From Penicillus capitatus (Eukaryota > Plantae > Chlorophyta), in assembly GCA_965649825.1 (NCBI GenBank), contig OZ287701.1:981101-1045100 (forward strand): 64,000 nucleotides of DNA. Direction: 5' to 3'. The position numbers were made by a program, and so were the translations under genes. The notes below the pieces were generated by a model. The model made no database searches. It saw nothing but the letters and a program-made list of their open reading frames with translations, and had not been told where the DNA came from. Shown here in pieces: positions 1 to 64,000 of this stretch; position 1 is the first letter of the stretch, and every line of letters starts with the position of its first letter.

Positions 1-1287
1 GGCTCAGTCAAGAGAAAATACAATGCCAGCCAAGTCTATGCACCCCGCCCAACAACAGAGATCATCATCTCACTCGATCTGCAGAGAACGGCCTACCTGT
101 CCTTCTAGCTGACACAATCGAAAACGCTCATTGGCGGCGACGGTTGTCCATGCGTTGTCGACATACTTCTCGATCTGCAAAGAATACAACGTCGGCTGAC
201 TGTCACATCATGGCGGCGAACTCCGGACTTTGTTTCCTGAGTATCGAACCCAGGGAGAAGAGTGGATCAAAGGAATGAGTGTCATGATCATGTCCAACGA
301 TCGCAAGACACAGCCCATGACACACAGAGGCAGTCTAGGCAGCGTTTCCGCAATGTACCTATCCACAGCCGCTCTTCAAGAGAGAAGAGATCGTGGCTGG
401 TGCTGACGCGAAGATCGTCATGGCGCATGCCGCTGTGCTGAAACGGATCTGATGGGACTTTTCAGCCATGTCCTCTTCGGGCTTCATTTCCAGCAGTTCT
501 CGAACATCTGCAGCAGCAACAGTCACATCAATTATCTCACTCTATCGCAATGATGTGACCTCTTTGCTGCTTTTGTCGAATGGCTGAGACGTTGAGCCAC
601 GTGAGATGCCGATGGCACCACATAACGATCTCCAACAACGCATCGTCTTCCAAGTCTTCAAGCGAAGACTTGTCAAAGAAGCAGATCTGATCACGATCGG
701 CGTTGCTGTCTGCGCTCGGTCATCGATGATGCGTAACCTCGATGAGATTTGCGATGGTCACTTCGTGGTGCAGTACAAAATACCAGCTGAGTGCATTCTC
801 TTCTCGACAGAAATGCGATTTCAGTCGAGGGAAGACGTTCTCACGCCACGCCTGAGCTTGCGACCGTCCGTCACATCACGAAGGTCGTTTTAGTGATTGG
901 TCGCGGACCTCAATGACGAGCAGCTCATGCACAAGGGTGGCGATTTTCTCGTGGCTCGTCAGAAATTGGACGACGTACTCGTCAGACTGCGTCCTTGCGT
1001 TATGGTGGGCCTTAGAAGAACAGCACAGGTCATGAGACGTCGGGGATATGCGTCAGCGACGGACCTGCAGATTGAGCTTCTCGATCGCGTCCTTCTGCTC
1101 CATCCATCTGGCACTGCCGACCTGAACACGCAAACAGACCGCCACTCGATCACAAACAAACATACTCCCTTACCTCTTCGATACTTATACGCCGCAAGCC
1201 TTGAATCATCATTTCCGCAAGGGACGCCGTCAGTGGTGCCGAATCTTCATCTCTTGTGCGGCGTTCTTGGATAGGCAGTCTGTCCAT
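1..1287 (-). CDS. ZMYND10: ZMYND10/BLU-like axonemal dynein assembly factor (multi-exon, 3' end runs off the window)
   Basis: Manually spliced peptides VGSARWMEQKDAIEKLNLQ|AHHNARTQSDEYVVQFLTSHEKIATLVHELLVIE|AWRENVFP...VLHHEVTIANLIE, IVMWCHRHL and EKYVDNAWTTVAANERFRLCQLEGQ match the ZMYND10 pattern (EKLNMQA, VEELIAVEMWKQKVFP, HHEASIINLLE, YCHRKL, KLDGQVW). ATG at 1287; GT-AG introns of ~50 nt. Confidence 0.88.
522..559. repeat. Inverted pair GTCACATCA-N20-TGATGTGAC forming the 5' part of a ZMYND10 intron
   Basis: Read directly; the minus-strand intron 559-508 begins AG|GTCACATCA, and splicing restores the frame (QQR|DVRELL). Confidence 0.85.
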
Positions 1288-1352
1288 CTGCTTCGACGTG
1301 CTGGATATCTGGCGGCAGAGTCGTCAAGGCGGTCGTTGAAACGCTGAGCGGA

Positions 1353-4183
1353 ATGTCAAAGGAGTATGATGGACTGACTCATCGGCGCGCACAGACATCG
1401 TCGTCAACGCGCATCGCTCGCGGGAGGTTTCGTCCATCGACAGGTGCTGATCTCAGTAATGTCCATTGGATCGCAGATAACGCAATTGGCCTCGCAAACG
1501 CAGCGCTGTCATCGATACCGAATCTCATGGAAGGGGATATCGTCGAGGAGGTGGTCTCATGGTTAAGCGTCGACAGACAACGCCATCTGGCACGCCGCAG
1601 GTGGAACGCGAGATTCAAGGCTATGAGGATTTCTTGAATCGCAAGAGAGATGCGCCATCGAAGGCGACATCGCCACGTCTCCCTCTTACAAAGCCTTCGA
1701 TTTCCGAAACCCATCTTCCGTCGCATCCGTCTTCGCATGGGAAGAAAACGGAGGACGTGATGTTACCCGACGACCGACTGGAGATCGCGCTCTCGACGTC
1801 AGACGAAGAGGAATTGAGTGCACTCTTCGATCAAGCGCTTACCATACCGTCGGGAGCATCTGCAAGAACCTCCAATTCACTCAACGGTGCGATTCGTGCA
1901 GCGCTACGAGAACGTTACGAGCGACGACGTTAGATGCGCCATCGGCTCGAACTGTGTCACTGGCGGAGGCTGCCGAGATTCCAGTTCCACAGCGGGACTG
2001 GTTCGATTTCAAGAACGGAAATATCCAGACGAACAGCGGTGCGGCGATATTGGTGCCTTCCGTCGACGTCCTTCTGCGCGTTCAGGTCCGGAAGAGATCA
2101 CGTCGTCGGCCTACAGTCAAATCGGTGGCTCGTCATACGCAGCGAGTTTACCAGCCAGCGTCGCCAAACCCGAGCAGGTTACGAACGCGGCGGCATCGTC
2201 CTGTGGCGCATGACTGTCGATATCTTGTCACGATACAGGAGGCCAAGCAGAAAAACAGACATTCCAGAGATGCCGTCCAGAAGAATATCGAGGAGGAGAT
2301 GAAGAGGGAATTGACGTTTCGTCCACGACTGATTTCGAAGCAGCGGCGCTACGAAAAGACGCCAGAAAGGCAAGACAGGTGCGAGCCCAGGAATCGGCGG
2401 CATCTGACAGAACGAGGGCATTGTGGAAGGGATGCTCGACTGCTGCAGCTATCGCAGCCGAAGAGGCGCGTGTATGAGACGATGCGTCAGGAGACTGCCG
2501 TCGAACGACAAGAGGCGGCGGATTTGGCCGAGTGTTCGTTTCGACCCAAAACGGGCCGACCGCCAGAGAACCGTCGCAGTGATCGATCCGTAGAAGAACG
2601 GCTGTATCACGCACGCGACGGCAGAACCAGCGCCCTGTAATGCCCCTTGCTGACACCGAGAACACATCCGTATGGCTAAAGGGCGCGGCACACCGCCAAG
2701 AAAGAAGAGAGCGCTCTACTCGAATGCACTTTTCGTCCCGTGACGAACAGCAACAGAGTCAAAGTGAAGAGCTACGTGCCGCTGCAAGAACGGGCGATGG
2801 AAATTCAAATCGCAAAGAGAGAGCGTCTACTGAATCAGAGAGACGAGGTCAGGGAGCCGCCGCAAGTGTGCATCCATCGGCATCGCCTGCGCTTAGGAGA
2901 CGACTTTTGCGCCGGCAATCAATCCACGTTCACAGAAACTCGTCACGCTCAGGAAGAAGAGGTTGTTAAGGAGGATGGAACGGACAGATGGATTGTGTCG
3001 GATCTCTTCTTCGGCGTCGGAGGCCGACGAGCCAGAAGTGTCACTCAAGGCAGCGTGCGTCGCTAAGAGTCGTCGAGGCACGGCGTTGCTATGGCTGTGC
3101 TGCAGCAGGGCTTCATACGAAAGGGATGGCCCGTTTGTCCCGCGAATCAATCCTGCGTCGAAGCGGCTGATTCGCCGCCTCAGTGTTCCTGAAGACTTCA
3201 TGGCTCGGCAGGTGTATTTTGACGAACTCAAGAAGAAAAGGAAAGCAGCGATTCGGATGGAAATGGTGCGTGGCGGCGCCGTTATATACTCAGTCCTACG
3301 ATGTCCGCGTTGTAGGAGGGAGAGGACTGTACGTTTGCCCCTAAGACGAATAACACAGCGGACGTCTTGGCGGCGTCGAGATTCGCTGGACGTCTGGCAG
3401 AAGACGGCGATGAATTTCTGGAAAGATTGGCGCATAAGGATCCCGAATCAAAGGAAGCGAAGCTGCATGCGATGAGCCATGCCGAAATGGCGGCCTACCC
3501 TTTTAAACCCGAAATCAACTCGATCTCCAAACTCATCGGCAAAGTAACCGTCCATCTCACTCTTTTCGAGACTCGCCCATCGAGAGCACGGCGCCAGAGT
3601 CGCACGGTGGAGGAATTGTACGAGGAAGGGAAGAAAAGGAATCGAGTGACGGAACCACAAGATGACGTTATGGAATCGGAATGCACCTTCAAGCCATCGG
3701 TGCACAAGTCCTTACCTAAGTACCTTCGCCTGAAGGCATCGGATCCTCAGGTCGAGCATAAGATGACGGCCTCCTGGCGTTGTGCATCTCTCAAGGCAGT
3801 GCAGGTCGAGGCGAGATTGTGGCAAAAGGCCGAAACGAAGGCGGCGCTTCGGACGCGTCGAAACGAGGAGATGCAGAAGCGGGCAGCGAAACAAGAGATG
3901 AAGGAATGTACATTTACACCGCACATTAAATACCACGTTCCGCAGACCAGGGTGCGATTCGATCGCGCTTTGCTTTCATGGTATCTTTCGTCGTCAGGGG
4001 CCGATCGCCATAGCTGGATTGGGAAGATATCTGGAACTGAGACAATCGGCGCAGCGAATGAAAGAGGAGCAAAAGCGAAGGGAGGAAGAAATCTTTCATC
4101 TTAAATCTGACAGTCCAATGGCAAAATTCACCATTCCTGAACCGTTCAAGCTCTCGGCGCCGCCACTCAAGGGCGAAACGTGA
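1353..4183 (+). CDS. Charged coiled-coil protein with ~9 (E)CTFxP-type repeats and a C-terminal TxPxPF motif; possibly microtubule-associated
   Basis: Repeats seen across exons: ELTFRPRL, ECSFRPKT, ECTFRPVT, TFAPAINP, PFVPRINP, CTFAPKTN, YPFKPEIN, ECTFKPSV, ECTFTPHI. C-terminus reads FTIPEPFKLSAPPLKGET* (stop 4181-4183). Exon structure only partly resolved. Confidence 0.6.
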
Positions 4184-4289
4184 GGCAACGTGGTCTCTCG
4201 GTAGATTGCTTCCTCCTTGAGGCCGACGTCAAATTCGGCGTGCTTGGATGTGCTAAAGTACAGAGGGATGTTTGTTTGATGTGACAGAT

Positions 4290-5804
4290 CTATTGGATGT
4301 TCCGTGAGACGCCCAAGATTTCGGCGGCGTGCGTTGTCGTTAGCTCGGATGGAAAGATCTGAACGTCTGGGGCGCATTCTCTGAAAACGGCGGACTTCTC
4401 CAGGATCTCGCGTTCCTCTTCGGTTGTGATCATGTAGAGCCAGACGCCGTCACCCGCCGTCGCGCGACCGATCGAACAGAAGAGTGGAAAGGTGGGAAAG
4501 GGCGGCAAGGTATAAGCATAGATCGGTCCGCCAGATCCGAAATCGATATCATCAAATGCCAGTTTTGCATAAGACGGTGCAATGCTGATCATCTCCGACA
4601 GTTCTTCGTCCCCTGTCGAATTGGACGATCGGTAAAAGAAGAGGATCGCCTCGAGATTGGCCTCGGGTTTCTGCTGGATGTCAAAGACACGTCGCCGAAT
4701 CGACGATGCCGCTTGAGCTAACGCATCTGTGAATGTCGCCAGATGGTCTTGACTGAAGCTGCCTGTGACGAGAGACGCCGCTGTCGCATTGCCAAAGTAA
4801 TTCTGCGGAATCACGGGGACAGATGTTGTGCGGACGTCGACAGAGAGGAACAGCGATGTGCCATCGATGGGCAAGGCGGATGATGTGACAGGATGTGACG
4901 TTGACTTGCATTCTGCCTTGTACAGCCAATGCAGCGCACAGACCAGATCATTGGTCGAGACAAACGGCACCCCCTGTAGCTTGCCCTCGACACTCTTTTT
5001 CATTTGATCAATGGTTTTCTGTCAAAACATCCGGATCAAATGGATCAGGTAGGTAGTAGCGTGCAAATGTGTGACCTGTGGGCAGTGGACGAGGGCGATC
5101 GAGAGAGGCGGCATTTCGACGTCTGGCATCTCCGGTGCCGTGATGTGACGTGGATACATCTCGGGTGTGTGTCCCGGAACGTCAAAGTGTGAGATATAAC
5201 TGTCCGGCCAATAGAAACTCCGATCGAAATATCTCGCAGCGATCGGCATGTCGCGATAGGCGCGGCCAATATCGGCGAGCAACTGAACCATGCGTTCACC
5301 GTCACACACGAGATGCCGCAAGGCAACACTGAAGACGCACCCATCGTTGAGATGCGTGAGATGCACACCAAAGAGCGGCGCCGTATCGGAGAGCACCGGA
5401 TGCGACTCGACGGGATCCAGATAGAAAGGCCACGTCATACAGAGTGGTCCAGAGGGACTGGGTCCCACGATCATACGCTCAGCGCATCGTATGCCAACGA
5501 GATCGGTATCGACCCGAATCTCGACGGCGATGAATCCGTTGTCTTCATCCGGGTCGACGCGGATACAATGTCGTCCGTTTTCTGCCGGAACTAATCGCCC
5601 GCAGAGAAGGGGATAGGACTGCTCGAGTGTGGTCAGCGCTTTGAGCAGGGACGGCCATTCGATGTCGGTCGTGTAGAAGAGGGGCCAGCAAATCCAGCTC
5701 TGTAGCATGCCGGGATCCAAATCGATGGGGCACAGTTCATAGCTTTGCGCTTTTGTCAATCGCGTCGAGACGCGCTCGACTGCCAGTACAGAGATGGATG
5801 TCAT
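4290..5804 (-). CDS. BAHD-family acyl-CoA-dependent acyltransferase (2 exons)
   Basis: HXXXDG catalytic motif (LRHLVCDG), YPLLCGRL N-terminal motif, NYFGNA and a DFGSG variant of the DFGWG motif; one intron joins ORFs 5022-5804 and 4290-5003. Confidence 0.85.
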
Positions 5805-6335
5805 GGGATGGCTGTGATGGTTGCGTTGCAGCTCCTTCGTCTACGTTCACTTGATGTGACAGATCGACCGCCTCGTGTCTGACGAGCCGCCGCAGTGGCT
5901 GTCCACTGGTCGTGCGTGATGTGACGTTCAGAAGAACAGCGACGTTCGTTTGTGCCTTGCGCAGACACTCGGCTGTCACATCAGCATCACGCGTGTACCG
6001 CACAAAGCAGCGGGAGACAGAAGCCCGCGGATGCGCAGCTTTTTTGCCGTTTCTGGTGCCTTTCCGCTTCAGAGACGCGTCTGGGCTATTCTGTAAGGCG
6101 CACGACTCGTGTCTGTCACTCATGCCGCGTCGCGCACCTAATGGTACCCAGACACATCTGGTCCAACTGCTTGATACAGGTATCCACGTGTCCGTCTTCC
6201 ATCAGAAACAGTCTGAGCGTTGCCGAAATCCTGAGAGTTTTGATACAAAAGAGCGGAGTTCAGAATTCCATTGGATGATAAGGAATCATTGGGCTTTCGT
6301 GTTGATTGTCGTAATACGGATCGTAGAACATGGAA

Positions 6336-7304
6336 CTAGATCCTGCTGAAGATGCTGCACAGGGATACGGTGGAACAGAACCACTTCCTGGAGTACGACT
6401 CAGCAACGCCAGAGCACTCCCTGTGATCCACGACCCATGGTTCATGATGTGACAGGCATAAGGACCCACCCATAGTGATGATCTCAGCAAAGGCATAGAA
6501 CATCATATCCAGTACACCATCCTCCGAATACGTCAGTCCCTTCTCCTTCAACGTCGATGCGATTTCTGTGGCTGCCTTCAAAATGAAACTGATGACAGAG
6601 ATGGCAGTGATGGAAGAGACCTCTCGAATCTGAAGCGAAAGGACAGACATGGGTGCAGTGTGAAAAAGAGTGAGAAGTGTGACCTTGTTCATAAGAGTGG
6701 CGGAACGGATTGGAGAGTGCTTGAGCAAAGTTAAGAGTTTGCCTCCATAGTATGCGAAGGCGGCCATGGCGACGATGTCCAAAGTGGCAAGCAAAAGGGC
6801 AGATGCCCGACGCCCCACATGCAATGTCTCATCATAGGCACAGAGACTCCACAAGAGAGCACCTGTGACGTAGCCAGCCACATTGATCACAACAAAAATC
6901 GTCTGCAGGGAGCACTGCCATTGGACATCCATCTCCACATGAACAATTTCAGCCCAGAAAAGCACGAGCAGTGTGTAGGTGCTGAAGAAGAGCAGGCTGG
7001 TAAAGTCAACAACAAAAGTGGCAATTCCCGCTGTCTCAGGCTGACGATGCATGGGCTCACAGGCAAAGAGAGATACAGCCCTGAAGAGGCATATCACGAC
7101 ATTGAGTGTTTGAAATCCCTTTTGCATCGTCCATTGACTGATGTGGACCAGAAAGTGTATCCTTGCTAACTGAATCAGAGTAACGAGGCCCATGATGGAA
7201 TAGAGGGAAGCCAGGATATAGGGAATACAGGGACCACTGCCACATCCCGTTTGAAAGAGAGCTTGAGTAAAAGAAGCGTCGTCTTGCCCCAGAAGGACGC
7301 GCAT
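6336..7304 (-). CDS. TOM1: TOM1/THH1/TOM3-like (DUF1084) multi-pass membrane protein
   Basis: LIQLARI...WTMQK.F..LN...RA and LLFFSTYTLLVLFWAEI motifs, plus REVSSITAI, match the tobamovirus multiplication 1 family; at least one intron near 6630-6685. 5' end uncertain. Confidence 0.82.
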   Translation of the reverse strand: MRVLLGQDDASFTQALFQTGCGSGPCIPYILASLYSIMGLVTLIQLARIHFLVHISQWTMQKGFQTLNVVICLFRAVSLFACEPMHRQPETAGIATFVVDFTSLLFFSTYTLLVLFWAEIVHVEMDVQWQCSLQTIFVVINVAGYVTGALLWSLCAYDETLHVGRRASALLLATLDIVAMAAFAYYGGKLLTLLKHSPIRSATLMNKVTLLTLFHTAPMSVLSLQIREVSSITAISVISFILKAATEIASTLKEKGLTYSEDGVLDMMFYAFAEIITMGGSLCLSHHEPWVVDHRECSGVAESYSRKWFCSTVSLCSIFSRI

Positions 7305-7970
7305 TGACGCGCGCAGGTCCAGCAGTGCGCACTAACTACCACGCTGGTCACAGAAACGCTTCCTCATACGGGCGCGCCGTGCAGAATCGATGAGCAATTG
7401 TCGGGCGACGACGTGTGCAACGCTGACAGGCAACCAGCCAGTCCGTCAGTCCGTCAGACGGAGACGGTCATCTTCAGCCGAAATCGTTCAATGATGCATT
7501 TGATCGAAGGCACAAGGCGGGTGAAGGACAAGACAAGCAACCGTTTTGCTGAGCTGTTTGTGACCCACTGCTATTTTGCACATGGTGCGGTTTTCCAAAA
7601 CGGGTCTATGGAGTAAACGTTGCCGCAGATGCTCTCCGCGTCATCTCCTGTATGGCTGGCACTGTCTCGATGCGGCCAACATCCAAAAACCTTACAGCCA
7701 TCGAGCTGTCTGCGGCTAAGTTGGACGGAAGAGCTCGTCCGTGGCGTTGCCGTCGCCAAAGGGCTGTCCTTTCAGCGCGAATCGCATGGCAGCAAGGACA
7801 AAAGCGAGAAGGAGCTGCTAGCCGTGTGAATGTTGCTCGTGATGGGGGTGGTGGATTTCAGCCATGGCGCTGGGACACAGACGTGCTCTTCAGTTCATGC
7901 ATCTTAAGCTTTTTGCCGACGCCATCGTCGCGAACGAACGGACCATCTGTCTTTCGACGCGTGGCTCAGC

Positions 7971-8703
7971 TCAGGAGACAGAACGAAGGGCTTCCGCTGT
8001 CTGTGCTGCACGGCAGCGTCTAAACATGGCGTTCTTAACAGACAGCATCCGTCGCAGCAGCTGTCTGGTTATCCAACTGGCCCTCTTCCGCGCAGTTTCT
8101 GTGGAACGACCGCATGCTTCCATTAGAAGGACAGAACCGTTTTGCTGCGAGGATACGACGGCAACGGTCGTCTGAGCTGGGTAAACGAGGACAGCTCGAT
8201 CCGTGCTGTAAGAATCCGGTGCATCTGGAAAGCAGCTTCTCCTTGATTCGACGTCGGCATTGCGAATCGCCCGGTTTCCTACGAGCTTCGCATCCACGTC
8301 GTGGCTCCTTTCCGTCCTCGCGGAGACAATTTTCCAACGCTCGGTCGTTCCGTTAGAGCTGTTTTGGGACACAGTACTTATAGGAGTGAGCCACACTCAC
8401 GCGTATGACGCGGTTATCACGTCGCTATTCGCTGCATTCCGCATCGCGTTCCGTTTCGTGGGGATACGATTTTCGTTTGTTATCCTGCAGGACGCGGTAG
8501 CGAAGTTCCATACGACCAAGCAACTGTTCCTGTGTCTGGTCCAGAAAGGCGGAAAGTGACTGACTATCCACATCAGCCGCGTATGCCGCGTAGGCGCCCC
8601 GCGTCGCAGGACGAATAGTATTTCTTCTATAGACGAGGAGCTTTGCCAGAACGAGATTTGAACGCGTGGCCTTCTTTTGGAGCAGGACATCGAGGACGGA
8701 CAT
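7971..8703 (-). CDS. Hypothetical protein (probable spliced gene, product unknown)
   Basis: ATG at 8703 lies head-to-head with the kinase-like gene; coding-like segments and a plausible gtgag...cag intron near 8360-8400. No recognisable domain; frame not resolved. Confidence 0.25.
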
Positions 8704-8776
8704 CTTAGGGCACTACTTATCTTGCTGCCAGCTTGCGGTCTGCTTTGAAGCTGCTTATCTGTGACAAGAGAAATCG

Positions 8777-11879: not shown

Positions 11880-11992
11880 GACGTCGCGCTATCCGTGATG
11901 TGACGTCTGAGCAAACGGAACATGTCAGGAAAGAGCCACCTGTAAAAAAGAGCCATTGCCAGCACATCGCTGCATTGTTTGGACTGTCGGCA

Positions 11993-13472: not shown

Positions 13473-13507
13473 GTCCTCTCGTTGGACAAGACACAAAAAA
13501 CGCTCGT

Positions 13508-46010: not shown

Positions 46011-46062
46011 TTTGGAGTGCGAATGGACGCATTTCGATGAGGTCGTTTTGCTTTCATACGCG

Positions 46063-46733: not shown

Positions 46734-46809
46734 CAGCCGATGTGACGTTTGGCATTTATCGATCGATGCATGTCGTCTGTTTCGATTTTTTGGCGCTCGT
46801 TTGGATATC

Positions 46810-52969: not shown

Positions 52970-53049
52970 ATACTCCCACGCGAATGATGTGACAGATGTG
53001 TGAGAATACGTGTGAACAAGAGCGGTGTTTAAAAGAGAGCATCTCTGAA

Positions 53050-55908
53050 TCAAAGCACAGGCAAAGCTGTCGATGGGTTCGATTTGAGATAGTCTTCCGT
53101 CGCTTTGAGCGTCGCCGTGGCGTCCATCATGTCGTCCATACGTATCGAATCGCGTCGTCGGAGGGAGAAGAGCTCGGCCTTGAGGGCGGCGAAGAGTCGA
53201 GCGAGGTAAGGGTAGTTCTGATCGATGCCGTCTTGAAGAGACGCCACGAGTTGCAAGAGACGACGATCGGTCAGTCGAGAAAACAGCATGCCTTGTCGAA
53301 AGTGGAGAAATTCTGTCAGAAAGCCCTTGGCATAGGGATTGTGCCCTTTCAGAAGATCCGCCCGAAAAAAGGACTCGGCATATCTGAGCATAAAGAACGT
53401 GCCCATGCGCTTGATCCGGCAACGAAAGAGAAGCCGCCGGAAGGTATGCTCCTGAACATGTCTCTGATCCAGCTTCGTGGCAGATTCCAACATCTTCATC
53501 AACGATCCGTTATCGACGCGCTCGTGCGTCAGGAAGGTCTCCACCAGTCGTGCTGTCACATCAGATGGCATGCGTCCTGTATTGGACAGCGCCGTCAGGA
53601 CGCTGCTGAGACCGGCAGGGGTCATGTGTGAGATGGCCTCACAGTTATCGCGCTTAAGCTCGCTGACAAGTAACTCCCAGATTCCAGCGTCCGTCACTCG
53701 GAGCTTGCCAAGAGAGTGCACGATCCAAGGCAGCTGCTCGCGTTCTTCGGGTGACATCGCCGATCGACTGCCGACAGGGATGAGCGATCGAATGATCTTT
53801 TCCAGGGCGTCGCGATTAGAATACTGCAAAATCGTCAAGGCGTGCAGAATCACAGACAACTGTTTTTTGCTGAAGGTTGGGAGCCGTGCCGGATCCAGGA
53901 CGTATGATATGAGCTCGTCGAGTAGATGCTTGTCTTGTATTCTATGGTATGCCATCGACAAGACCAGCGTTGACAGAATCCCAGTGTCCATATCTGCACG
54001 GCGCTCCTTTCGCAGAATCTCCTCGAGCAAAGGTCCCGTCACCTGGCTCCGCTGATAGCCGCACTTGCCCAATCCAAAAAAGATATTGCAGACTTCAAAG
54101 GTGTTGAACGTCGACCAGTCCGTTCTGAAGAAAGGCAGCAGCAGATCGTCGAGCGTGCGCCAGTCGTGAAAGCGCAATTCGCCGAGGCCGAAGAAGAGAC
54201 AAGCCCAGAGCTTCGACGTGAATCGATCGATGACGTCTGGCTTCAGCGCTCTCCGGACGAACGGCGTGATCTCCTGTTTCGGAACCAGACGACAGCATCG
54301 GATTCCGCCAAGGGTATAGATCGTCAGGGCGATGGAGAGCGAAGAAGGCGTCGGCAATTGCAGAATGGCCTGACTCAGCGCGGCACCAGATTTGCGCAGA
54401 GTGGTCGTGGCCTTCCATCGCACACGGTTCAATGCCACGAAGGCGCCCACGAGATTCTCTTCGGACAGACAGCTCAGTCTCTCGGGCGTCGTGATCTCTC
54501 GGAAGAGTTTCGCGATCAGCGGCTGCTGTGGAATAGTCGAACGATGCACGAGGCCATGGATGGCAGTCATAAGGGTGACATCACGAAAAGAAGATAGCCG
54601 CCTTCGTCGGAGGATTTCGACGGATACCGCCTCCCATACGATCGGCCGTTGCACTCGGCTGCCAAAACTGTAGAGCACCATCGCCAGACCTTCCTCGTCG
54701 AAGTTCTTTAATCGAAGGCGAAAGACAGACGCCTGACTCAACTGATCCCACAGATTCAGGTCTTCGATATCCAGTAGATGCATTCCGAGGGCGAGCTGGG
54801 AGAGTCCCCGAGCATCGAGCTGTGCGATACGGTCCAGTTGCTTGATGTGACGTACGAGTCGTGCAATGTCGGAGGAGCAGGAGTGAGACAGACGACCAAG
54901 GGAGAGACAGATGCTGGCGAAGGTCCTGCCATCGTAGCGCAAGATGCGTTCCCGGCGACACGCTTCCGTCGCGAGCTTTGCATGGATATCATCATTTCGC
55001 CATTGCATTCTGGCGGCGCTCTCGAGTAGAGAAGCGACGGTGGCGTTGGAGAAGAGGCCAAAATTCATTTCGCTCAGTGCCAATCGCGTCAACGGCTGCA
55101 GCGTGTAGTAGTCGGAGATGCCCATTCGACTCAGTCCGTGCACCAGACAGGCGAGGTGGGTCGGCGAGAGGCCATTCAGTTTGGAAGCGGATTCGATACA
55201 TGCGACGATGCTCTGCTGAAGTGACGTTTCACGAAACTGTAACACGCTGATCGCATCGATGATCTTGACTGTGTGCTCGACATCGATCGCTGTCTCCAGC
55301 ATCGACATGATGTGATGTGACAGCTGATGCAGCACTTCATGCGATGCCTCTGCCATAGAGAACGACGCATCTCTGGCGATTCTGTGCAGCTGCGCCAACG
55401 AGGCAACGCAGTTTACGACGTCTTGATGCGAGAGATGCTCCTTTGAGAAGACACGAGACTGTCCACATGATGTGACAAACTGTCGCAGGGCATTTCGATC
55501 GAGAGAGGACTGTCGAGTGCAGGTCTGGAGAATGCGAATAACCGTCTGCGGCGCAGCGCCATCGAGTTTCTGCGCCGCCTCGATCAGCAACTCCGCGACA
55601 GACGCGTTCGATACGGACGAACGAACTTCGGCCGACGCCAGCAACTCATGGATCTGCAGAAGGGATAAGGAGGACACGTGCGTGCCTGTTGTACACTCCG
55701 TTGATACCAGCGTTGGTGGTGATCCAGCTACTGGACGGTCTTCGTCTCCTCCTGCCTTCGACGGCGCTGCATGAAAGACGCGTGATGTGACGTGCCGTGC
55801 GCTGTCGAGGACGCATGGCAGCAGTTCTATTTGCGGACAGCGACAGATTAGACGGACGACGTTGCAGACGGCATGTCTTTCAGTTGATAGGAAGAACCCG
55901 AGCCACAT
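53050..55908 (-). CDS. Organelle-targeted helical-repeat protein (OPR/FASTK-like, ~38-aa repeats), single exon
   Basis: 952-aa ORF with ~37-38-aa repeats, e.g. FNTFEVCNIFFGLGKCG, FSKKQLSVILHALTILQ, LSPTHLACLVHGLSRMG; basic N-terminal targeting-like sequence; no RAP domain seen. Confidence 0.72.
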   Translation of the reverse strand: MWLGFFLSTERHAVCNVVRLICRCPQIELLPCVLDSARHVTSRVFHAAPSKAGGDEDRPVAGSPPTLVSTECTTGTHVSSLSLLQIHELLASAEVRSSVSNASVAELLIEAAQKLDGAAPQTVIRILQTCTRQSSLDRNALRQFVTSCGQSRVFSKEHLSHQDVVNCVASLAQLHRIARDASFSMAEASHEVLHQLSHHIMSMLETAIDVEHTVKIIDAISVLQFRETSLQQSIVACIESASKLNGLSPTHLACLVHGLSRMGISDYYTLQPLTRLALSEMNFGLFSNATVASLLESAARMQWRNDDIHAKLATEACRRERILRYDGRTFASICLSLGRLSHSCSSDIARLVRHIKQLDRIAQLDARGLSQLALGMHLLDIEDLNLWDQLSQASVFRLRLKNFDEEGLAMVLYSFGSRVQRPIVWEAVSVEILRRRRLSSFRDVTLMTAIHGLVHRSTIPQQPLIAKLFREITTPERLSCLSEENLVGAFVALNRVRWKATTTLRKSGAALSQAILQLPTPSSLSIALTIYTLGGIRCCRLVPKQEITPFVRRALKPDVIDRFTSKLWACLFFGLGELRFHDWRTLDDLLLPFFRTDWSTFNTFEVCNIFFGLGKCGYQRSQVTGPLLEEILRKERRADMDTGILSTLVLSMAYHRIQDKHLLDELISYVLDPARLPTFSKKQLSVILHALTILQYSNRDALEKIIRSLIPVGSRSAMSPEEREQLPWIVHSLGKLRVTDAGIWELLVSELKRDNCEAISHMTPAGLSSVLTALSNTGRMPSDVTARLVETFLTHERVDNGSLMKMLESATKLDQRHVQEHTFRRLLFRCRIKRMGTFFMLRYAESFFRADLLKGHNPYAKGFLTEFLHFRQGMLFSRLTDRRLLQLVASLQDGIDQNYPYLARLFAALKAELFSLRRRDSIRMDDMMDATATLKATEDYLKSNPSTALPVL

Positions 55909-56045: not shown

Positions 56046-57146
56046 CTAAGCAGGAGATGGTGGCTGCTCAGGAACCGTCAGTCCACGCGTCTTGCACGTA
56101 TGCTCCACGAACTCATCGATTAAGTACGGCCAGGCGCCATTGGGATCGAAATTTGAGAAATCTGATCGCACCGTCTGCAGGTCACACAAACGCATTTCTC
56201 ACACTTTGTCGGAAAGAGTGAGGCGTGTGACTGACCCATGCAAAGTCCAGCAGCTGATCCCATGTGTCTTTCTGGATGGCAATGAGGTCTTTGTTTTCGA
56301 GAAAGGCGCACCAATCGGGTAGCAATTCCCATTGACGTTTGTCACGGAACATCAACTGCCACAGCGCCGTCGCCAAATTCTTCTCCACAAACCTCTTCCC
56401 TGTCTACAACCATCGCCAGAACAGCATAAGAGATGATCATCTCGTGGCAGACTTCGCGAGCAAAGAGAAAAGAGAATTCGTAGACTTTCCGGAAAGTGAC
56501 ATCCGAGTCGAGCTCGGTCGGCAGTTCCGACAGTCGCTCTTTCAGTTTGTCTAGGGAGTCGCATCCGAGCCGCACCATGGCCGCCGTAAACTCCTCTTTG
56601 CTGAACATTCCCATATGGGCAGCATTAGCATAGTAGCTGAAGACCAACTAGATAGCCAAAGAGTGAGATCTCACACATGATGATCATGAAGTACGAGTGA
56701 GATGTCCGAAGGATCGACATCCAGGTCTTCACAGAACTGTCCGACACCATGGGCGGACATGATGTCTCCATCCGGATCTGGAAAAGAGTGAGAAGTGTGA
56801 GAATATTGTTATTTTGTGATACCTTTGTATTTGTTCCATAGTCTGTCGATGCTGCGCTTGTCCGTTCTCGAAGCGGATCGAACGGGAGCGCGTGTGTTGC
56901 TGTTGTTGAAGTAGGTATCGAGGGAGCGCTGCAAATTAAACCCGGCGTTTTTCAACGCGTCGAGCGCCATCCTCTCACTCCATTCACAAACGCAGACACT
57001 CAGCAAAGGACTGGCACAAGAGACGACGACGACTTGCTGCCCGTCACAGCGCGAAACTGCTCGATGTCTCTCTTCTGTTGACGATTGAGGCGATTCTACG
57101 ACACACAGGTCGCAGCTGCGGTGAGCGTTGTCGGGTATCCTACCAT
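56046..57146 (-). CDS. DCN1: DCN1-like (defective in cullin neddylation) protein
   Basis: UBA-like N-terminus (IEQFRAVTG...ALDAL), FCEDLDVDP, FSKEEF, VYEFSFLFA, W..FL, I.KDTWDQLLDF and D.NGAWPYLIDEFVE (PONY domain). Confidence 0.92.
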
Positions 57147-57291: not shown

Positions 57292-58665
57292 ATGTCCGAT
57301 AACGCTGAGCCTTGCGTCGTGCCCATCGTCTGCGATAATGGCTCTGGAATGATCAAGGCAGGATTTGCCGGTGCGTACATTCACCCTCCCTCACTCCTGA
57401 CCCTTTGCTATTTGTCGTACAGGAGAGGCCACACCGCGTGCCGTCTTTCCCTGTCTCGTTGGACGGCCACGTAGTTCCAATGCCTCAGTCATGACCGGCA
57501 GCAATCCGAAGAAGCATTATGTGGGAGAAGAGGCGCAAGGGAGGCGCGGGATACTGACGCTGAATTATCCCATCAAGTATGGCGTCGTGACCGACTGGGA
57601 TGACATGGAGAAGGCACGTCATCGCTGACATGACGTCTGCTCAGATGGTTGATGTGACAGGTGTGGCATTACACTTTTTACCAAGAGCTGAAGGTCGCCC
57701 CTGAGGAGCATCCGATTCTGGCCACAGAGGCGCCGCTGAATCCAAAGAACAATCGCGAGAAGATGACGCAGATTCTGTTCGAGATGTTTTCTGTACCGGC
57801 TGTCTATGTCAGCATCCAGGCTGTCCTCTCGCTCTATGCCAGTGGTCGCACAACAGGCATCGTGTTAGATGCGGGTATGATGTGACAGCTCGGTCATCTG
57901 TGTGAGATGCTGCCGTAGGCGATGGCGTTACACACACCGTGCCCATCTACGAAGGCTACGCACTGCCCAATGCCATTCTTCGTCTGCAACTGGCCGGACG
58001 TGATCTAACTGACTACATTGCTAAACTGCTACTCGAACAGGGCGTGTCCTTTCTGACCAGCTCCGAGAAAGAGATCGCGCGCGATATCAAAGAGAAGACG
58101 TGTTACGTGGCACGCGATTACGCAAAGGAGTTGGAGAAGACGTCGTTGGAAGAGAAGCCCTATACACTGCCCGATGGCCAAGTCCACCGCCTCTCTGCGT
58201 CTATGTGTCCAGAAATGAACGTGTAGGTCATTCAAATCGGCAGTGAACGATTTCGCTGTCCCGAGGCACTCTTTCAGCCGCATCTCATCGGCGTTGAGGC
58301 GGTCGGCATTCACGATACCGCGTTCAATTCGATCATGCGTTGCGATCTCGATATTCGTCGAGATCTCTACGGCAATATCGTCATGTCGGGCGGCACGACG
58401 ATGTTTCCAGGTGCGGTCGCGAGCCTGCGTGGATGTGACCGTGATGTGACAGGTTGTAGGAATGGCAAATCGGATTCAGAGGGAGTTGATGGATCTGACG
58501 CCGAGTTCGATGAAGATCAAAGTGGTGGCGCCGCCGGAGAGGAAACACTCTGTCTGGATCGGTGGGTCGATTTTGACATCGCTCTCAACTTTTCATAACA
58601 TGTGGATTTCGCAAACGGAGTACGAGGAGGCCGGGCCGTCGATCGTACACAGGAAGTGTTTCTGA
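57292..58665 (+). CDS. Divergent actin (NAP-like)
   Basis: [63 protein letters not shown]; full length, with many substitutions relative to conventional actin; 5 introns, one of them GC-AG. Confidence 0.93.
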
Positions 58666-58760: not shown

Positions 58761-58797
58761 CTGCGACGAAATTCATCGCTCGAAAACGGCATGGGAC

Positions 58798-58829
58798 GTC
58801 ACATCAAGACACACCTTCTGTGATGTGAC
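58798..58829. repeat. Inverted pair GTCACATCA-N14-TGATGTGAC between actin and RNase HII
   Basis: Read directly from the sequence. Confidence 0.85.
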
Positions 58830-58977: not shown

Positions 58978-59770
58978 ATGGCCTTCATCGAGTATGGGTC
59001 GTCTTTTTTGCAGCGAACACCGCCGCCGACGTTTCGATACGAGGAAAAGCATTGGAGACAGGGTCGACGTTGTGTCGTGGGTGTTGACGAAGTGGGTCGC
59101 GGGGCGTTAGCAGGACCCGTTGTCGCCGCAGCCTGTCTCCTCGATCCACGCGTCGAGATCGAAGTCTCCCGACACGATTCGATCCGATTTCCAATCAGAG
59201 TCCTTTCTTTCATAGGGACTGCGCGATTCAAAGCGCCTCACTCAACGACAGATTCGACGTATCTCCGATGTAGTGATGAAGAAGTCGATGACTTACTGCG
59301 TGTACGATTCCGTGACGATATCACACTTTCGGTCACTCTTTTTATCGCAGCTGTGTGATCGATCACGACGAAATCGATCGTCTCAATATCCGACAAGCGA
59401 CACTGAAAGCGATGCACGGCGCAGTATCGAATCTGCAATTGCGATCGGGCCACGATATCGATATGGTCCTCATCGATGGTCAAGATACCCCCGTCGATTT
59501 GACGATCGACTCCGAAACCATTGTCCACGGAGACGATCTCAGTCTTTCCATCGCCGCGGCGTCCGTCGTCGCAAAGGTTTCGCACAAAAAAAACGATCGT
59601 CACCAATGTGTGAGATCCAGGCAATGCGTGATCGGATCATGGAATCGTACGATGAGGAGTATCCTCAGTATTGCTTTGCCTCGAATAAAGGGTACGGAAC
59701 AGAAAGGCATCGGGCAGCGATTAAGGAACACGGTCCCTGTCCAATACACCGAAAAACGTTCAAGATGTGA
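58978..59770 (+). CDS. rnhB: Bacterial-type ribonuclease HII (probably organellar)
   Basis: [67 protein letters not shown]...[10 protein letters not shown]. Start may lie further upstream. Confidence 0.92.
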
Positions 59771-59837
59771 CCTGCCCAGATTTAAACGCATCTCAGACGA
59801 TGCACGGTTTGAAAGTGTGACCGAAGAGTGAGATCTT

Positions 59838-60170: not shown

Positions 60171-60214
60171 GGTGTCGAATAGGGAATGCGTGAAAATGGA
60201 TCCGTCTTTGCGTG

Positions 60215-60881
60215 ATGAAGCTGCCGCCGAATCATGTACCGGGCGTCGGCGTCGTCCAGAGCACAGCATGGGGCGGCATTGGGCAGAAACTGCTGGAGAA
60301 GATGGGATGGTCTGCCGGAGAGGGACTCGGAAAACGGCGTGACGGTCGACGCGAGGCGATCCGTGTACAGACCAAACACAACACCCAAGGAGTACACACT
60401 CATGCTGACGAGACGTCACATCAGTCTTACTCCAGCTAGGACTCAAGAAGAAAGACGACTGGGATGTCGAGTCATGGAAAGAGATCTACGAGAACAGTCT
60501 ACAGAAATTGAGCCAGGTACATACGGAATGGAGTGAAGTGTGACGGAGACGTGTTTGTTCGTGCAGGTGGTGAATGCGAGCGATACCGACTCGAGTTCTT
60601 CAGAGGAAGACGCAGAGGAGAGGACCGAACGTAGAACGAATCCAGACGGCACTGTGTCTACGGCGGCCCATCGGGAATTGCAAATCTATGCCTATCTATC
60701 GAAGCCGCAGCAACGGCAGATGGGACGATGGTCTTCTCGGAGTGCCAAACTCGAACGGATCCGAAAACAAGAGCAGCAGCAAAAACAAGAACCGCCGCCG
60801 GATCGAACCAAAAAACGCAAAAAATTCAAGAAAAGCACAGACCGAACGGAAGCGGTATCCAACAAAAGAGTGAAAGAGTGA
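60215..60881 (+). CDS. G-patch domain protein (PINX1/GPATCH4-like N-terminal G-patch)
   Basis: GQKLLEKMGWSAGEGLGKRRDG...K.NTQG|LG G-patch, followed by a WxEIYENSL helix and a lysine-rich tail. Confidence 0.8.
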
Positions 60882-61004
60882 AAGAGTGAGAAACGTGCTT
60901 TGGATGGCGTGGACGGAAACGGACATGGTTTCTTTGTTACATGCAAAGCCGTCAAAAAATGATGTCTCAAAACAAAACGATGTGCGTATGGGGGAGGACA
61001 TCGT

Positions 61005-64000
61005 TTAGAAGGTCGTTCCGTCATCCCGGTCGTCCGTTGCATAATCCGATCCTTCATCGTCTTCATCATCGGCCGCGTATCTTGAAGCTCCTTTTTCGTT
61101 TCCTCCATCCGACGTCGCTGTCGTTTCATCATCCTCTTCATCCTCATCGACGACCCTAAGATCGATGTACCCAAAAGAGTGAGATATAGAGTGAGATCGC
61201 GTACTCGAAGATGTCGTAGATCGAAGGACTCGTGGTGGTGGTCGTGGATTTTTCAGCAAGGCTCCTGTGAATGACGGTCGTGTCTTTTCTGGACGCGGCA
61301 AAGAATGCCGCATAGACACAGCGAAAGACAAAGAAACCGACGATAACCGATGCAGAAAAGACGAACAGACGACTTTTGTCTTGGAAGAGGCCTCGAATAC
61401 CAGACGCTCGCTCCGAAGATAACACCCTCTCTTCCACACCTGTCACATCTGGAATCCAAATGGAATTGATCCATATCGAAAGGAATTGCTCAGAAGTGTG
61501 ACCTACCGTGCGATGCCGAATCAGATTCTGTCGTGGGCGTTTGAGAAACGTGGGCGGCGGAAAGGTCCTGACGCAGGCGTAGCGTACGATGCTGTCTTTG
61601 GTTGGGCAGGGGGTTACTTTGACAACCGGGATTCGATCTTGGTATTCAGCATCGGTTGGCTGTGTGTGAGGAAGCGTGCTGTCTTCGCCATAGAAAGAGT
61701 GAGATTCTTGACCGTTGCTTAAAACGACGGTCTCTTTCTCCACACCATCGTCCTTAACCGGCGCAGAAAATGATGCAGACGGTGGATCGTCTGTCCGGGT
61801 CTCGTTCGTTGCGATCGTTGCAAAGGCGCCAGCTCCGGCGAGAAACGTCTCTTCGTTTTTGCGGCTGTTCTCTTTCTCATTCAGTAGAACCTCGGCTTTG
61901 GACATGTCCTCTGTGATCGCTTTGTTGTCGACAGGTTCTATATCGGCGCCGTTCGATGATTGTTCGTCTTCGATCTCATCGCTGATCTCCTGGCTGATCT
62001 CCTGGCTGATCTCATCGCTGATCTCATCGCTGATCTCATCGCTGATCTCCTGGATGATCTCCTGGCTGATCTCATCGCTGATCTCCTGGCTGATCTCATC
62101 GTCGTCGAGTTCGTCGTCCGTCGATTCTGGCTTGGCTTGAGGGACTTCGTCTGTTTGGTCTTCTTCCTTTTCCAATTTCATTTTGGCTTCGTCTTGACTG
62201 CTGTCGTCTTCTGTCACCGTTTCGCCTCCGTTTGAACCCCATATCGAGGAATGCGATTCTAAGGATCCCATCACTGGCTGCAGTCCTGCTGCTTCTTCCT
62301 CGTCTGTCTCACTTCTTGGCTCGATGTGAGGCATGGCTGCCTCCTCTGTCTCGATCGCCGCGGCATCTTCCATGAGAACACTATCTGGTTGTTGAGGTGC
62401 CAATTCAGCAAGCTCGTCGACAATGCCATCATCCACCGAATCATCCATTCTATTCATTTCTGCCTTGTCCTCTTCCATAAAAGAGAACGAAATCTCCTCG
62501 AGTGCATCGCCAATATCCATATCTGTGTCGATCACTGCATCTGTCAGCTTTGATGTGACAGGTTCATATTCTGGGATTTTCTCATCAGATGCATCATCAA
62601 CCTCTGTGTCGATCACCGCATCTGATAACTTTGATGTGACAGGTTCAGACTCTGAGACTTCATCCTCCTCGGGTACATCACCAACTTCCACCTCTGTGTT
62701 GGAAAGTGTATCTGCCAGTTCTGACGCGACTGGCTCAGACTCTGGGACTTCGTCCTCCTCGGGTACATCACCAACTTCCACCTCTGTGTCGGTCACCATA
62801 TCATCCAGCTTTGTTGCCGTGAAAGTCTCGTTCTCCTCAATTTTCTCCTCGGGTGCATCACTAACATTCTCCTCTGTATCGGTCATCGTGTCTGCCAGCG
62901 TTGACATGACAGGCTCATATTCTTTCTGTATATGGGACGAGGTCGATTCGGATATGGCCTCCTCTTCTTCTTTGTTTACTTCTGGTTCTGCCTCTTTGTC
63001 TGCGTCAATTCCTGTCTCCGTTTCCATAACTTCTTCCAACACAGGCGCTGCACTCTCGGCAATCGTCATAACCACCTCAGCTGCTGCAGTTTCTTCCACG
63101 TCATCTGTGTTGACAGCGACAGCTGGTTGCTCTTCTTCCGCTTCGGACGACAACTCCTCATCATCTCCAGCATCTTCCGGCAATTCCGATTCTTGCTCCG
63201 GCATAATAGACATCTCCACTTCCTCCTCTTCCCTGTCCGCTTCCAAAATCCCAAGAGGAGACTTCGTCGCAGTCGCCTCTTCGTCATCCGATGCACCAAC
63301 GGACACATCATCCAGAGAGAACGATGACAGGACTGCTGGGTCCTTCTCTGGCAGGCCATCATCCGCAGAGATCTCGATCGGATCTGTCGACGCAACTGAC
63401 GGTTCTTCCAGCACTTCCATCTTCGTTTCTTCTGACGGCTGTGGTAATTTCTCTGCTTTTAGCATTTCTTCGGTAAACTCTTTTGGCGTCTCATACATGC
63501 TCACACTTTCTATGTCCTGTTGATCTTTAGCAACATCCACTTCATTCATCGTTTCGTCAAAATCATTTGCACTGTCTTCGCCGATCTCTTCCTCTGTGGC
63601 CACGATTTCTGACGCGACGGCGGGAGCAATCCCCTCTTCGATCAGCCCTTCCTCTTCCTCTTCTTCTTCAAGCTCCGTTTCCGTCACATCCTGCTTCGGC
63701 TCTTCCTTTTCGATCTTCTCTTGCTCTTTGGGTTTTTGAGAACCACCTTGAACAATCTATCCGCCATCCGTACTCGATCAAGATCCCTGCTGGATGATAG
63801 ACGTCTTACCGTTTGAAGAAGTTGAGCTCCGGCAATGAAAGCGGTGATGCCCACCAGGCCAACACTGTACTGTTGTTTCAACAGTGACGAAAAGTACTTT
63901 CGATTCGCCGCGCTGCGTCTCTTGAGCTCTCGACGGTCAGGTATCGCATCGTCACTGCTCGACTGCGTTTTCAGAATACGTCGACTGCGCGTTCGCGTCG
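61005..64000 (-). CDS. Highly acidic, repeat-rich membrane protein (5' end beyond the window)
   Basis: Frame open to the window end; hydrophobic segment SVGLVGITAFIAGAQLLQT|IV (intron near 63760-63810); ~750-aa D/E-rich region; second TM LFVFSASVIVGFFVFRCVYAAFF; acidic tail ending GTTF*. Confidence 0.7.
61972..62100. repeat. Coding 12-bp tandem repeat (GCTGATCTCATC/GCTGATCTCCTG), ~10.75 units, encoding EISD/EISQ
   Basis: Ten full units at 61981-62100 plus a partial unit, read directly from the sequence. Confidence 0.95.
62520..62915. repeat. Coding ~80-bp imperfect tandem repeat (~5 units; DTEVEVGDVPEEDEVxESEPVxSxL)
   Basis: Repeated CCTCCTCGGGTACATCACCAACTTCCACCTCTGTGT and CTTTGATGTGACAGGTTCA blocks. 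Confidence 0.85.

Follow-up and report, generated by a model that had tools for sequence, protein, structure and literature searches.

An exact, orientation-independent nine-base word in a compact algal genome: a putative duplex-DNA binding site of narrow phylogenetic range

A 64,000-nt stretch of algal DNA (contig OZ287701.1, positions 981,101 to 1,045,100, of the Penicillus capitatus assembly GCA_965649825.1; referred to below as the window) carries many exact copies of the nine-base word TGATGTGAC, and we consider this word to be, on balance, probably a cis-acting binding site that is read on double-stranded DNA by an abundant and highly specific factor. We favour this reading because the word is exact, conserved, independent of orientation, biased toward non-coding DNA, clustered at gene boundaries and in introns, and turning over locally. 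Protein binding, an effect on transcription or chromatin and the identity of the protein are what we infer from these properties of the sequence.

Results

The eight-base core of the word, GATGTGAC (complement GTCACATC), occurs 53 times on the two strands of the window, 32 times on the + strand and 21 times on the − strand. An earlier note on this DNA had listed 53 copies with their positions and strands, and all of them matched exactly. The core ranks first among over-represented 8-mers, and 100 dinucleotide-preserving shuffles gave only 3.59 ± 1.77 copies with a maximum of 8. Enrichment also held against the Markov nulls that the note had proposed, with expectations of 4.6 copies at order 3 and 20.9 at order 5, although the 5- and 6-mer counts used by the order-5 model are themselves inflated by the word. 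Among 9-mers, TGATGTGAC ranks first (38 seen, 0.9 expected). Alignment of the 53 oriented contexts showed T at position −1 in 38 of them and AG (20 copies) or GT (14 copies) at +8/+9, in agreement with the extension described in the note, while similarity ended beyond ~11 nt and the flanks were random. The full word is TGATGTGAC with a weak R-K extension.

Alterations of this sequence were poorly represented. Single-base variants at positions 2–9 of TGATGTGAC stayed at background level in the window (0–3 copies each), the sole raised variant being TGATGGGAC, which was slightly elevated (5 seen versus 0.6 expected), and at position 1 G, A or C was weakly tolerated. Wobble-type variants showed no enrichment in the window. 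With the word split as TGAT-G-TGAC, G was the only spacer base tolerated, and neither other spacings nor other combinations of half-sites were enriched in the window. The core GATGTGAC is not its own reverse complement. Most copies are single, and neighbouring copies have the same and the opposite orientation equally often; paired copies lie 10–15 nt apart when direct and 24–57 nt apart when inverted. The inverted pairs at 58798–58829 and 522–559 can fold as RNA hairpins with a 9-bp stem (−18.1 and −12.4 kcal/mol, z = −3.4 and −2.9, respectively), and the pair at 58798–58829 is kept with equal spacing in a sister species. Scanning the window for Rfam families and tRNAs gave no matches, and in our literature searches the word turned up only in primers and unrelated sequences.

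Proteins of the window are also encoded on long contigs of European Nucleotide Archive (ENA) metagenome assemblies, and their best named relatives are green algae and plants (33% identity for TOM1 and 72–73% for the actin-like protein); on this basis we take the source to be an uncultured microalga of the green lineage. Two contigs of a sister species, L002 and L005, came from a second ENA metagenome sample and were aligned directly to the window. L002 aligns to 1–14.9 kb with 84% identity and to 15.9–18.2 kb with ~81%, and L005 aligns to 43.1–64 kb with 84% identity up to 62 kb and 76% beyond. The core was perfectly conserved at 37 of 44 alignable sites, compared with 31.3% of all 8-mers (binomial P = 6.6e-13), and tests of the separate arms of the window gave 15/19 and 21/26. 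A test for conservation in related species had been proposed in the earlier note. A copy was retained within 25 nt at 40 of the 44 sites, three sites being displaced by ≤25 nt. Mean identity to the sister species reached 0.974 over the eight bases, compared with 0.808 for the flanks, and secondary peaks were seen at −1 and +9. Three copies upstream of a transferase-family gene are intact despite several indels in the spacer, and all five copies in a 952-aa open reading frame (ORF) are conserved while the proteins are only 80% identical.

Sites that differ between the two species carry one to three substitutions or have the copy moved by 4–12 nt, and no clean insertion or deletion of the word was found among them. 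Since the differences are point substitutions or short displacements, they form a pattern of binding-site turnover. Another contig, L001, matches window positions 1–17297 with 99.07% identity (142 mismatches and 19 gap positions) and encodes an identical TOM1 protein; judged by this alignment, it is a conspecific strain, haplotype or separate assembly. It holds 19 of the 20 left-arm copies, lacking the one at 15061. Hence the enrichment, which the earlier note had allowed might be local, is found in both arms of the window, in this conspecific contig and in the two sister-species contigs.

In both sister loci GATGTGAC is again the top 8-mer, with 18 copies in 20.7 kb and 32 copies in 22.6 kb. 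Contigs of more distant relatives hold 0–1 copies each: L003 (syntenic, TOM1 54% identical, 21 kb), L006 (TOM1 63% identical, 3.6 kb), L007 (actin and OPR neighbours, 9.8 kb) and L004, from a more distant alga. No word of comparable abundance appeared in the k-mer profiles of L003, L006 and L007, and no such word was found in L008, an unrelated, compact and nearly intron-free picoeukaryote of the same sample series. Because the sister loci are enriched while L003, L006, L007 and L004 hold 0–1 copies, the word system is, on the sequences compared, young and confined to a narrow clade. A scan of metagenome contigs for GTCACATCA-N8-30-TGATGTGAC kept 120 matches, all of them chance pairs or unrelated TG/CA-rich tandem repeats, and gave no further clade members.

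Two observations from these comparisons concern other sequences. L003 (21 kb, GC 43%) has a mild word of its own, (T)CCAATTCG, seen 10 times versus 1.4 expected, on both strands and also in the MOT1 coding sequence (CDS); it was not seen in L007, and it could reflect chance or a different 'dialect'. The Joint Genome Institute (JGI) metagenome contigs L014, L096, L010, L027 and L114 are unrelated and carry TG/CA-rich tandem repeats with many copies of GATGTGAC in long identical flanks (27 copies in 2.9 kb for L014); these repeats are satellites unlike the phenomenon in the window.

Coding and non-coding DNA were called with a self-trained three-periodic Markov hidden Markov model (HMM), which assigned 49% of the window as coding after retraining (32% in a first version that was too conservative). 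The model is rough: four of the six actin-like exons were separated, exon 1 was missed, and exons 5 and 6 were merged across intron 5. With these calls, the word density in the two core arms was 2.2–2.8/kb in non-coding DNA versus 0.4–0.9/kb in coding DNA, a difference of about five-fold. The earlier note missed this mainly non-coding nature of the word.

The highest local density was reached in short introns. We rebuilt introns by protein homology and cross-species alignment for the actin-like gene (five), the kinase-like gene (two), the transferase-family gene and TOM1. Spliceosomal introns of 44–60 nt are present in these hand-rebuilt genes, indicating eukaryotic gene structure, and the nine verified introns, ~460 nt in total, contain six copies. 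The copies stand at various places, one abutting the 3′ AG, one overlapping the 5′ splice site, a pair in the middle of an intron and one 23 nt from the 3′ end, and the sixth, in a kinase-like intron, is antisense as the earlier note had said. A splice signal (branch point or splice site) was rejected, as the strand and position of the word vary across the rebuilt introns and most copies lie outside introns. The transferase and TOM1 introns both begin with GTCACAC, which is near GTCACATC without being an exact match. The actin-like protein is divergent, being 72–73% identical to green-algal and plant actins; its gene has five introns of 44–52 nt, one of them GC-AG, and highly variable 5′ splice sites (GTGCGT, GCACGT, GTATGA, GTCCAC and GTGCGG).

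Gene ends were the other place of concentration. Most of the genes considered have flanking copies: of 10 genes, 4 have a copy in the 250 nt before them and 6 have one in the 250 nt after them. The transferase gene has three copies in the 180 nt preceding its ATG and a fourth immediately beyond its stop. Two copies directly precede the ORF at 13689–14492, one precedes MOT1 by 96 nt, and an inverted pair follows the actin-like stop at a distance of 135–160 nt. Neither the 761-aa nor the 679-aa ORF (4.3 kb together) contains a copy, and each has one on either side.

Long ORFs contain 12 copies, and five of these are in the 952-aa RESC6/OPR-like ORF at 53050–55908, the single-exon OPR ORF for which the note had counted five. 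When synonymous codons of 13 long ORFs were shuffled, 1.74 copies were expected and none of 2000 shuffles reached 12, so that the enrichment also survives the codon-shuffled null. An 81-nt coding tandem repeat at 62494–62921 lies within an 843-aa ORF; successive units carry the copies at 62552 and 62633, and the sister version has four copies.

Relative to the nearest predicted gene, non-coding copies are sense in 19 cases and antisense in 19, and putative short introns defined by the HMM contain three of each. Long open frames have more antisense than sense copies, at ~3:1 (about 16:6 counted from ORFs and 9:6 by HMM). Two of the three sense frames of TGATGTGAC contain TGA and the complement is stop-free; an antisense excess of ~3:1 is therefore what a duplex signal would give. 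Duplex-DNA recognition is suggested because the non-coding split is even and the coding ratio is explained by the TGA stops of the word itself. Together with the codon-shuffle excess and the tight footprint, these counts sustain the note's idea of a DNA-level signal independent of strand and frame.

The copies are distributed in three zones, as the note had described: 20 in 1–15.2 kb (1.3/kb), 7 in 15.2–45.6 kb (0.23/kb) and 26 in 45.6–64 kb (1.4/kb). Depletion in the middle zone, called accessory in the note, is significant (P = 1.3e-7), and the HMM calls gave 0.36/kb for its non-coding DNA and 0 for its coding DNA. Besides the two VWA/lectin paralogues, no internal repeats were found in this zone, nor were domains of transposon or viral origin. 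In L003 a Cyt-b5/CCDC61 block lies ~2.5 kb from MOT1 and in the window the two are >30 kb apart; this difference suggests that immune-like genes were inserted or expanded between the block and MOT1 in a lineage-specific manner. The edges of the zone are common to the sister species, but its two flanks are on different contigs there. The single VWA/lectin gene of the sister species is nearer to the second window paralogue (85%) than to the first (81%).

Table 1. Genes, introns, zones and copies of the eight-base word in the window. Positions are those of the window; 'conserved' means a perfect 8-mer match at the aligned position of the sister species.
Feature	Position	Strand	Context	Sister species or other contig
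Transferase intron	5019-5075	-	hand-verified	
TOM1/THH1 ORF	6336-7304	-		
TOM1 intron	about 6630-6683	-	rebuilt by homology/alignment	
Kinase-like intron	9592-9643	+	52 nt, hand-verified	
Kinase-like intron	9746-9805	+	60 nt, hand-verified	
Open frame	11052-11879	+		
ORF	13689-14492	-		
Motif-poor zone	15201-45600		NB-ARC ORF, two VWA + C-type-lectin paralogues, MMPL-like ORF, aldo/keto-reductase fragment	
VWA + C-type-lectin paralogue, first	16357-17859		85% identical to second over 300 nt	
NB-ARC ORF	21456-22136		in motif-poor zone	
VWA + C-type-lectin paralogue, second	38784-40544		85% identical to first over 300 nt	
RESC6/OPR-like ORF	53050-55908	-	952 aa	
Actin-like gene	57292-58663	+	five introns	
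Actin-like intron 1	57371-57422	+		
Actin-like intron 2	57614-57660	+	GC-AG	
Actin-like intron 3	57875-57918	+		
Actin-like intron 4	58182-58226	+		
Actin-like intron 5	58411-58459	+		
Copy	202-209	-	non-coding by HMM	conserved
Copy	522-529	-	left arm of inverted pair with 552	absent
Copy	552-559	+	right arm of inverted pair with 522	conserved
Copy	870-877	-	non-coding by HMM	conserved
Copy	4278-4285	+	4 nt downstream of stop codon, transferase-family gene (-)	conserved
Copy	4882-4889	+	transferase CDS, antisense; direct pair with 4892, 10 nt apart	conserved
Copy	4892-4899	+	transferase CDS, antisense	conserved
Copy	5142-5149	+	transferase CDS, antisense	conserved
Copy	5853-5860	+	~50 nt upstream of transferase ATG (5804)	conserved amid indels
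Copy	5918-5925	+	~115 nt upstream of transferase ATG	conserved
Copy	5975-5982	-	~175 nt upstream of transferase ATG, opposite orientation	conserved
Copy	6446-6453	+	3'-terminal part of TOM1/THH1 ORF	conserved
Copy	9621-9628	-	kinase-like intron 9592-9643, antisense	conserved
Copy	9775-9782	+	kinase-like intron 9746-9805, sense, 23 nt from 3' end	conserved
Copy	11275-11282	-	in open frame 11052-11879, non-coding by HMM	conserved
Copy	11897-11904	+	~96 nt upstream of MOT1 start (about 11993)	conserved
Copy	14497-14504	+	5 nt upstream of ORF 13689-14492; direct pair, 15 nt apart	conserved
Copy	14512-14519	+	second of 14497 pair	shifted few nt
Copy	15061-15068	+		segment unalignable; missing from L001
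Copy	15107-15114	-		segment unalignable; present in L001
Copy	20274-20281	+	depleted zone	
Copy	23663-23670	-	depleted zone	
Copy	23806-23813	-	depleted zone	
Copy	25098-25105	+	depleted zone	
Copy	31093-31100	-	depleted zone	
Copy	37533-37540	-	depleted zone	
Copy	40697-40704	-	depleted zone, just upstream of second VWA/lectin ORF	
Copy	45670-45677	-	non-coding by HMM	conserved
Copy	46269-46276	-	non-coding by HMM	conserved
Copy	46624-46631	-	non-coding by HMM	conserved
Copy	46739-46746	+	non-coding by HMM	conserved
Copy	47351-47358	+	non-coding by HMM	conserved
Copy	47985-47992	+	~270 nt upstream of 761-aa ORF	conserved
Copy	50646-50653	-	103 nt downstream of 761-aa ORF stop	conserved
Copy	50907-50914	+	23 nt upstream of 679-aa ORF	absent (GATGGGAG)
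Copy	52986-52993	+	80-nt spacer between two convergent ORFs	conserved
Copy	53555-53562	-	952-aa ORF, sense, read D-V-T	conserved
Copy	54844-54851	+	952-aa ORF, antisense	conserved
Copy	55314-55321	+	952-aa ORF, antisense	conserved
Copy	55469-55476	+	952-aa ORF, antisense	conserved
Copy	55784-55791	+	952-aa ORF, antisense	conserved
Copy	57651-57658	+	3' end of actin-like intron 2, directly before AG	conserved
Copy	57879-57886	+	5' end of actin-like intron 3, overlapping 5' splice site	conserved
Copy	58432-58439	+	actin-like intron 5, mid-intron, first of direct pair	copy 12 nt away instead
Copy	58443-58450	+	actin-like intron 5, mid-intron, second of direct pair	conserved
Copy	58798-58805	-	135 nt after actin-like stop; left arm of inverted pair	conserved
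Copy	58822-58829	+	right arm of inverted pair with 58798	conserved
Copy	59764-59771	+		conserved
Copy	60415-60422	-	putative short intron by HMM	same 8-mer at aligned position
Copy	61442-61449	-	843-aa ORF (-), sense	absent (TTGACATC)
Copy	62552-62559	+	81-nt coding tandem repeat of 843-aa ORF, antisense	conserved
Copy	62633-62640	+	next unit of 81-nt repeat, 843-aa ORF	conserved
Copy	63683-63690	-	near 5' end of 843-aa ORF	absent (GGCACATC)

Several other words are over-represented in the window. A second word, AAAGAGTGAGA(T/A) with the complement ATCTCACTCTTT, is found for example at 6668–6678, 56661–56671, 56786–56796 and 61177–61197 on the + strand and at 46650 and 535 on the − strand; GAGTGAGA was seen 23 times versus 2.9 expected. 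Conservation of this second word was observed for 11 of 20 aligned copies, compared with the 31% background, in a slightly offset mapping. It occurs in the TOM1 intron as sense-strand TTCTCACTCTTTTT just after the 5′ splice site, and could provide the short introns with a branch-point and pyrimidine-tract signal. Another word, AAGTGTGA(C), located for example at 6677–6685 and 59810–59818, was seen 15 times versus 1.9 expected, and AAGTGTGAC 8 times versus 0.6. AAGTGTGA(C) has GTGAC in common with the main word, and 8 of its 14 aligned copies are conserved, again with slightly offset mapping.

Discussion

Copies of TGATGTGAC occur in either orientation, the conserved footprint is limited to the site and accompanied by local turnover, and copies concentrate in non-coding DNA and at gene boundaries as far as approximate gene models can place them. 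These are features of a binding site read on duplex DNA. According to our model, one abundant sequence-specific DNA-binding protein or heterodimer would recognise TGATGTGAC; it would have arisen, or been directed to this target, in the ancestor that this alga shares with the sister species. Copies are located in the free space of a compact genome, namely introns of 44–60 nt and the spacers of 50–400 nt and untranslated regions (UTRs) at gene boundaries, with some in coding sequences under stronger constraint. At constitutively used genes the bound factor may have a general role, regulatory or architectural. It might keep promoters or gene bodies open, raise transcription from sites inside the transcribed region, or insulate adjacent genes from one another. 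The word is largely missing from genes of the variable NB-ARC/lectin zone. Among the functions listed in the earlier note, a transcription-factor or architectural site fits best, while a self-mark of bacterial type fits worse, the word being patchy and biased toward non-coding DNA.

Motifs of general factors and insulators are known from several lineages, such as yeast Reb1, Abf1 and Cbf1, Drosophila DRE/BEAF-32, and the plant telo-box and site II. They are short, sharp and orientation independent, occur at many constitutive genes, and the factor–motif pair may change between lineages. The present word resembles them in its concentration at gene boundaries and in its positional conservation with local turnover, but they concentrate in promoters, whereas the word is equally common in introns and downstream flanks and also occurs in coding sequences. 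The signal of intron-mediated enhancement in plants, TTNGATYTG, is likewise a DNA word plentiful in introns and transcribed regions of well-expressed genes. It differs in sequence, and the copies in the actin-like gene are in introns 2, 3 and 5, not in intron 1.

The closest described algal element is the zygotic response element (ZYRE) of Chlamydomonas reinhardtii, YGACAYGAC, whose activity requires GSP1, a TALE homeodomain protein (Hamaji et al. 2016, PMC4889651). ZYRE has no strand bias, is enriched in promoters, 5′UTRs and introns, occurs in clustered copies and works from an intron, and a ZYRE-like sequence, CGTGACGTGAC, is located in the DMT4 intron (PMC4889651). Both elements are 9 bp long and are built from a pair of directly repeated YGAY/YGAC units separated by 1 bp (5-bp register), and TGAT-G-TGAC is one base off the core of the ZYRE-like CGTGACGTGAC. 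Lack of strand bias, occurrence in introns, enrichment in promoters, 5′UTRs and introns, and clustering are also shared. Hence, the statement of the earlier note that the word is not a described algal element stands within our literature search, but the architecture of ZYRE is closely similar. If TGATGTGAC is read as two direct TGAY half-sites with a 1-bp spacer, a TALE-homeodomain dimer is a candidate class for the factor. The word is nonetheless no ZYRE: TGATGTGAC departs from YGACAYGAC at positions 4 and 5, has a far higher density (>1/kb), occurs on genes such as the actin-like gene rather than on a zygote-specific set, is conserved in coding DNA and 3′ flanks as well, and shows no degeneracy.

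Several results weigh against a binding site for such a factor. The sharpness of TGATGTGAC exceeds that of most transcription-factor site populations, and a graded set of weaker near-consensus sites was looked for and not found in the window; this absence is unusual for a transcription-factor motif and is the main reason why we keep other readings. No preferred single position relative to start codons was found among the genes considered. The spread is patchy, with gaps of 2–3.4 kb, and 3–5 copies lie within each of two ORFs, compared with none within two others. Within verified introns, five of the six copies are sense. Gene models are partial, being HMM calls plus a few hand-built genes, and counts of orientation and compartment are therefore approximate. 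For the candidate class in particular, the argument for a TALE dimer is one of architecture, and in the window the ZYRE consensus YGACAYGAC was not enriched (7 matches) and the variant TGACGTGAC was found 0 times.

The sense bias in verified introns would be expected if the word acted in the transcript, where it could be bound by an RNA-binding protein or paired with a small RNA and serve short introns with weak splice sites, or UTRs. The high density in these introns, their weak and varied 5′ splice sites (GTGCGT, GCACGT, GTATGA, GTCCAC, GTCAAC and GTCACA), the contact of the word with a 3′ AG in one actin-like intron and with a 5′ splice site in another, and the hairpins formed by inverted pairs point in this direction, and exact matching is suited to base pairing. 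We nevertheless regard an RNA-level element as unlikely. The position in introns varies from the 5′ end through the middle to the 3′ AG, one verified copy is antisense, and both the 19:19 split of non-coding copies and the 3:3 split in HMM introns are indifferent to strand. Moreover, antisense copies in coding sequences are conserved, wobble-type variants are not enriched, and copies upstream of start codons lie in indel-rich and probably untranscribed spacers.

Strand independence and exactness are also features of bacterial words that label a genome as 'self', such as the DNA uptake sequence (DUS), the uptake signal sequence (USS) and the highly iterated palindrome HIP1 of cyanobacteria, and uptake sequences show clade-restricted 'dialects'. 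We know of no eukaryotic system of the DUS or HIP1 type. A word of this kind would be recognised by machinery for repair, recombination, silencing or defence that separates self from newcomer DNA, and it seems improbable to us that TGATGTGAC is one. The same low credence applies to a eukaryotic 'genomic word', a clade-specific 8–9-mer selected at >1/kb, even through synonymous codons, with a dedicated factor that would license resident genes. Licensing might, for instance, protect these genes from silencing or direct repair or recombination, and recently acquired or fast-turnover DNA would be without the word.

DUS/USS and HIP1 (for HIP1, PMC5861425) resemble the present word in being exact 8–12-mers found about once per gene or kb, strand independent and in both coding and non-coding DNA, conserved beyond background, lower in accessory DNA and lineage specific. 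The density of ~1.3/kb, the all-or-none exactness, the excess of coding copies over the codon-shuffled null, the positional conservation, the narrow clade with its likeness to uptake-sequence dialects, the inverted pairs that in some cases lie downstream of genes, and the depletion of the variable 30-kb zone including its non-coding DNA all agree with such a role. The differences are that this host is eukaryotic and has spliceosomal introns, with no competence or methylation system implied, that HIP1 is palindromic and the word is not, and that the word is patchy and strongly biased toward non-coding DNA. The even spread over long-resident DNA that is expected of a DUS- or HIP1-like word was not found, as seen from the five-fold bias, the gaps of up to 3.4 kb and the copy-free ORFs, and clustering at gene boundaries and introns resembles regulatory sites. 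In addition, the depleted zone shows no transposon or viral genes and has its edges in common with the sister species, so that it is more than merely 'new' DNA.

Footprints or termini of a small mobile element, such as an introner or a miniature inverted-repeat transposable element (MITE) with GTCACATCA...TGATGTGAC ends, could have spread in the ancestor and would account for a word that is clade specific, abundant and frequent in introns, for some inverted pairs 24–30 nt apart, and for the GTCACAC start of two introns, a sequence similar to the word in reverse complement. This origin is very unlikely. Flank alignment, a repeat search that found no repeat families, and species differences of the substitution type gave it no support: similarity ends past ~11 nt, most copies are single with balanced orientations of neighbours, gains and losses between species are point substitutions and not indels, and purifying selection acts on the word while the flanks are free, with copies also inside conserved coding sequences. 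An origin without function, from composition, codon usage, mutational or gene-conversion bias or assembly artefact, is hardly credible even with the order-5 expectation of 20.9 and the two copies in a coding tandem repeat, as 53 copies far exceed that number and the model borrows counts from the word, the codon-shuffled null fails, single-mismatch neighbours are not raised, conservation is 84% versus 31% with a footprint limited to the word, three independent assemblies agree, and relatives of similar gene content and a control picoeukaryote have no such word. The flank, turnover and conservation tests thus contradict both of these origins.

If TGATGTGAC is indeed a binding site read on duplex DNA, one exact word would mark the majority of constitutive genes in a compact algal genome, with several copies for each gene, and would offer a handle on how transcription or chromatin is organised where genes have hardly any spacer between them. 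The system would further exemplify a regulator–motif pair that swept a genome within a narrow clade. Because the sister species shares the sites and slightly farther relatives have none, the origin of the system and the gain of the factor could be dated, and looked for, by comparative genomics. In addition, the word would serve as a practical marker for this lineage in metagenome binning, and would be a candidate part for expression constructs in small green algae.

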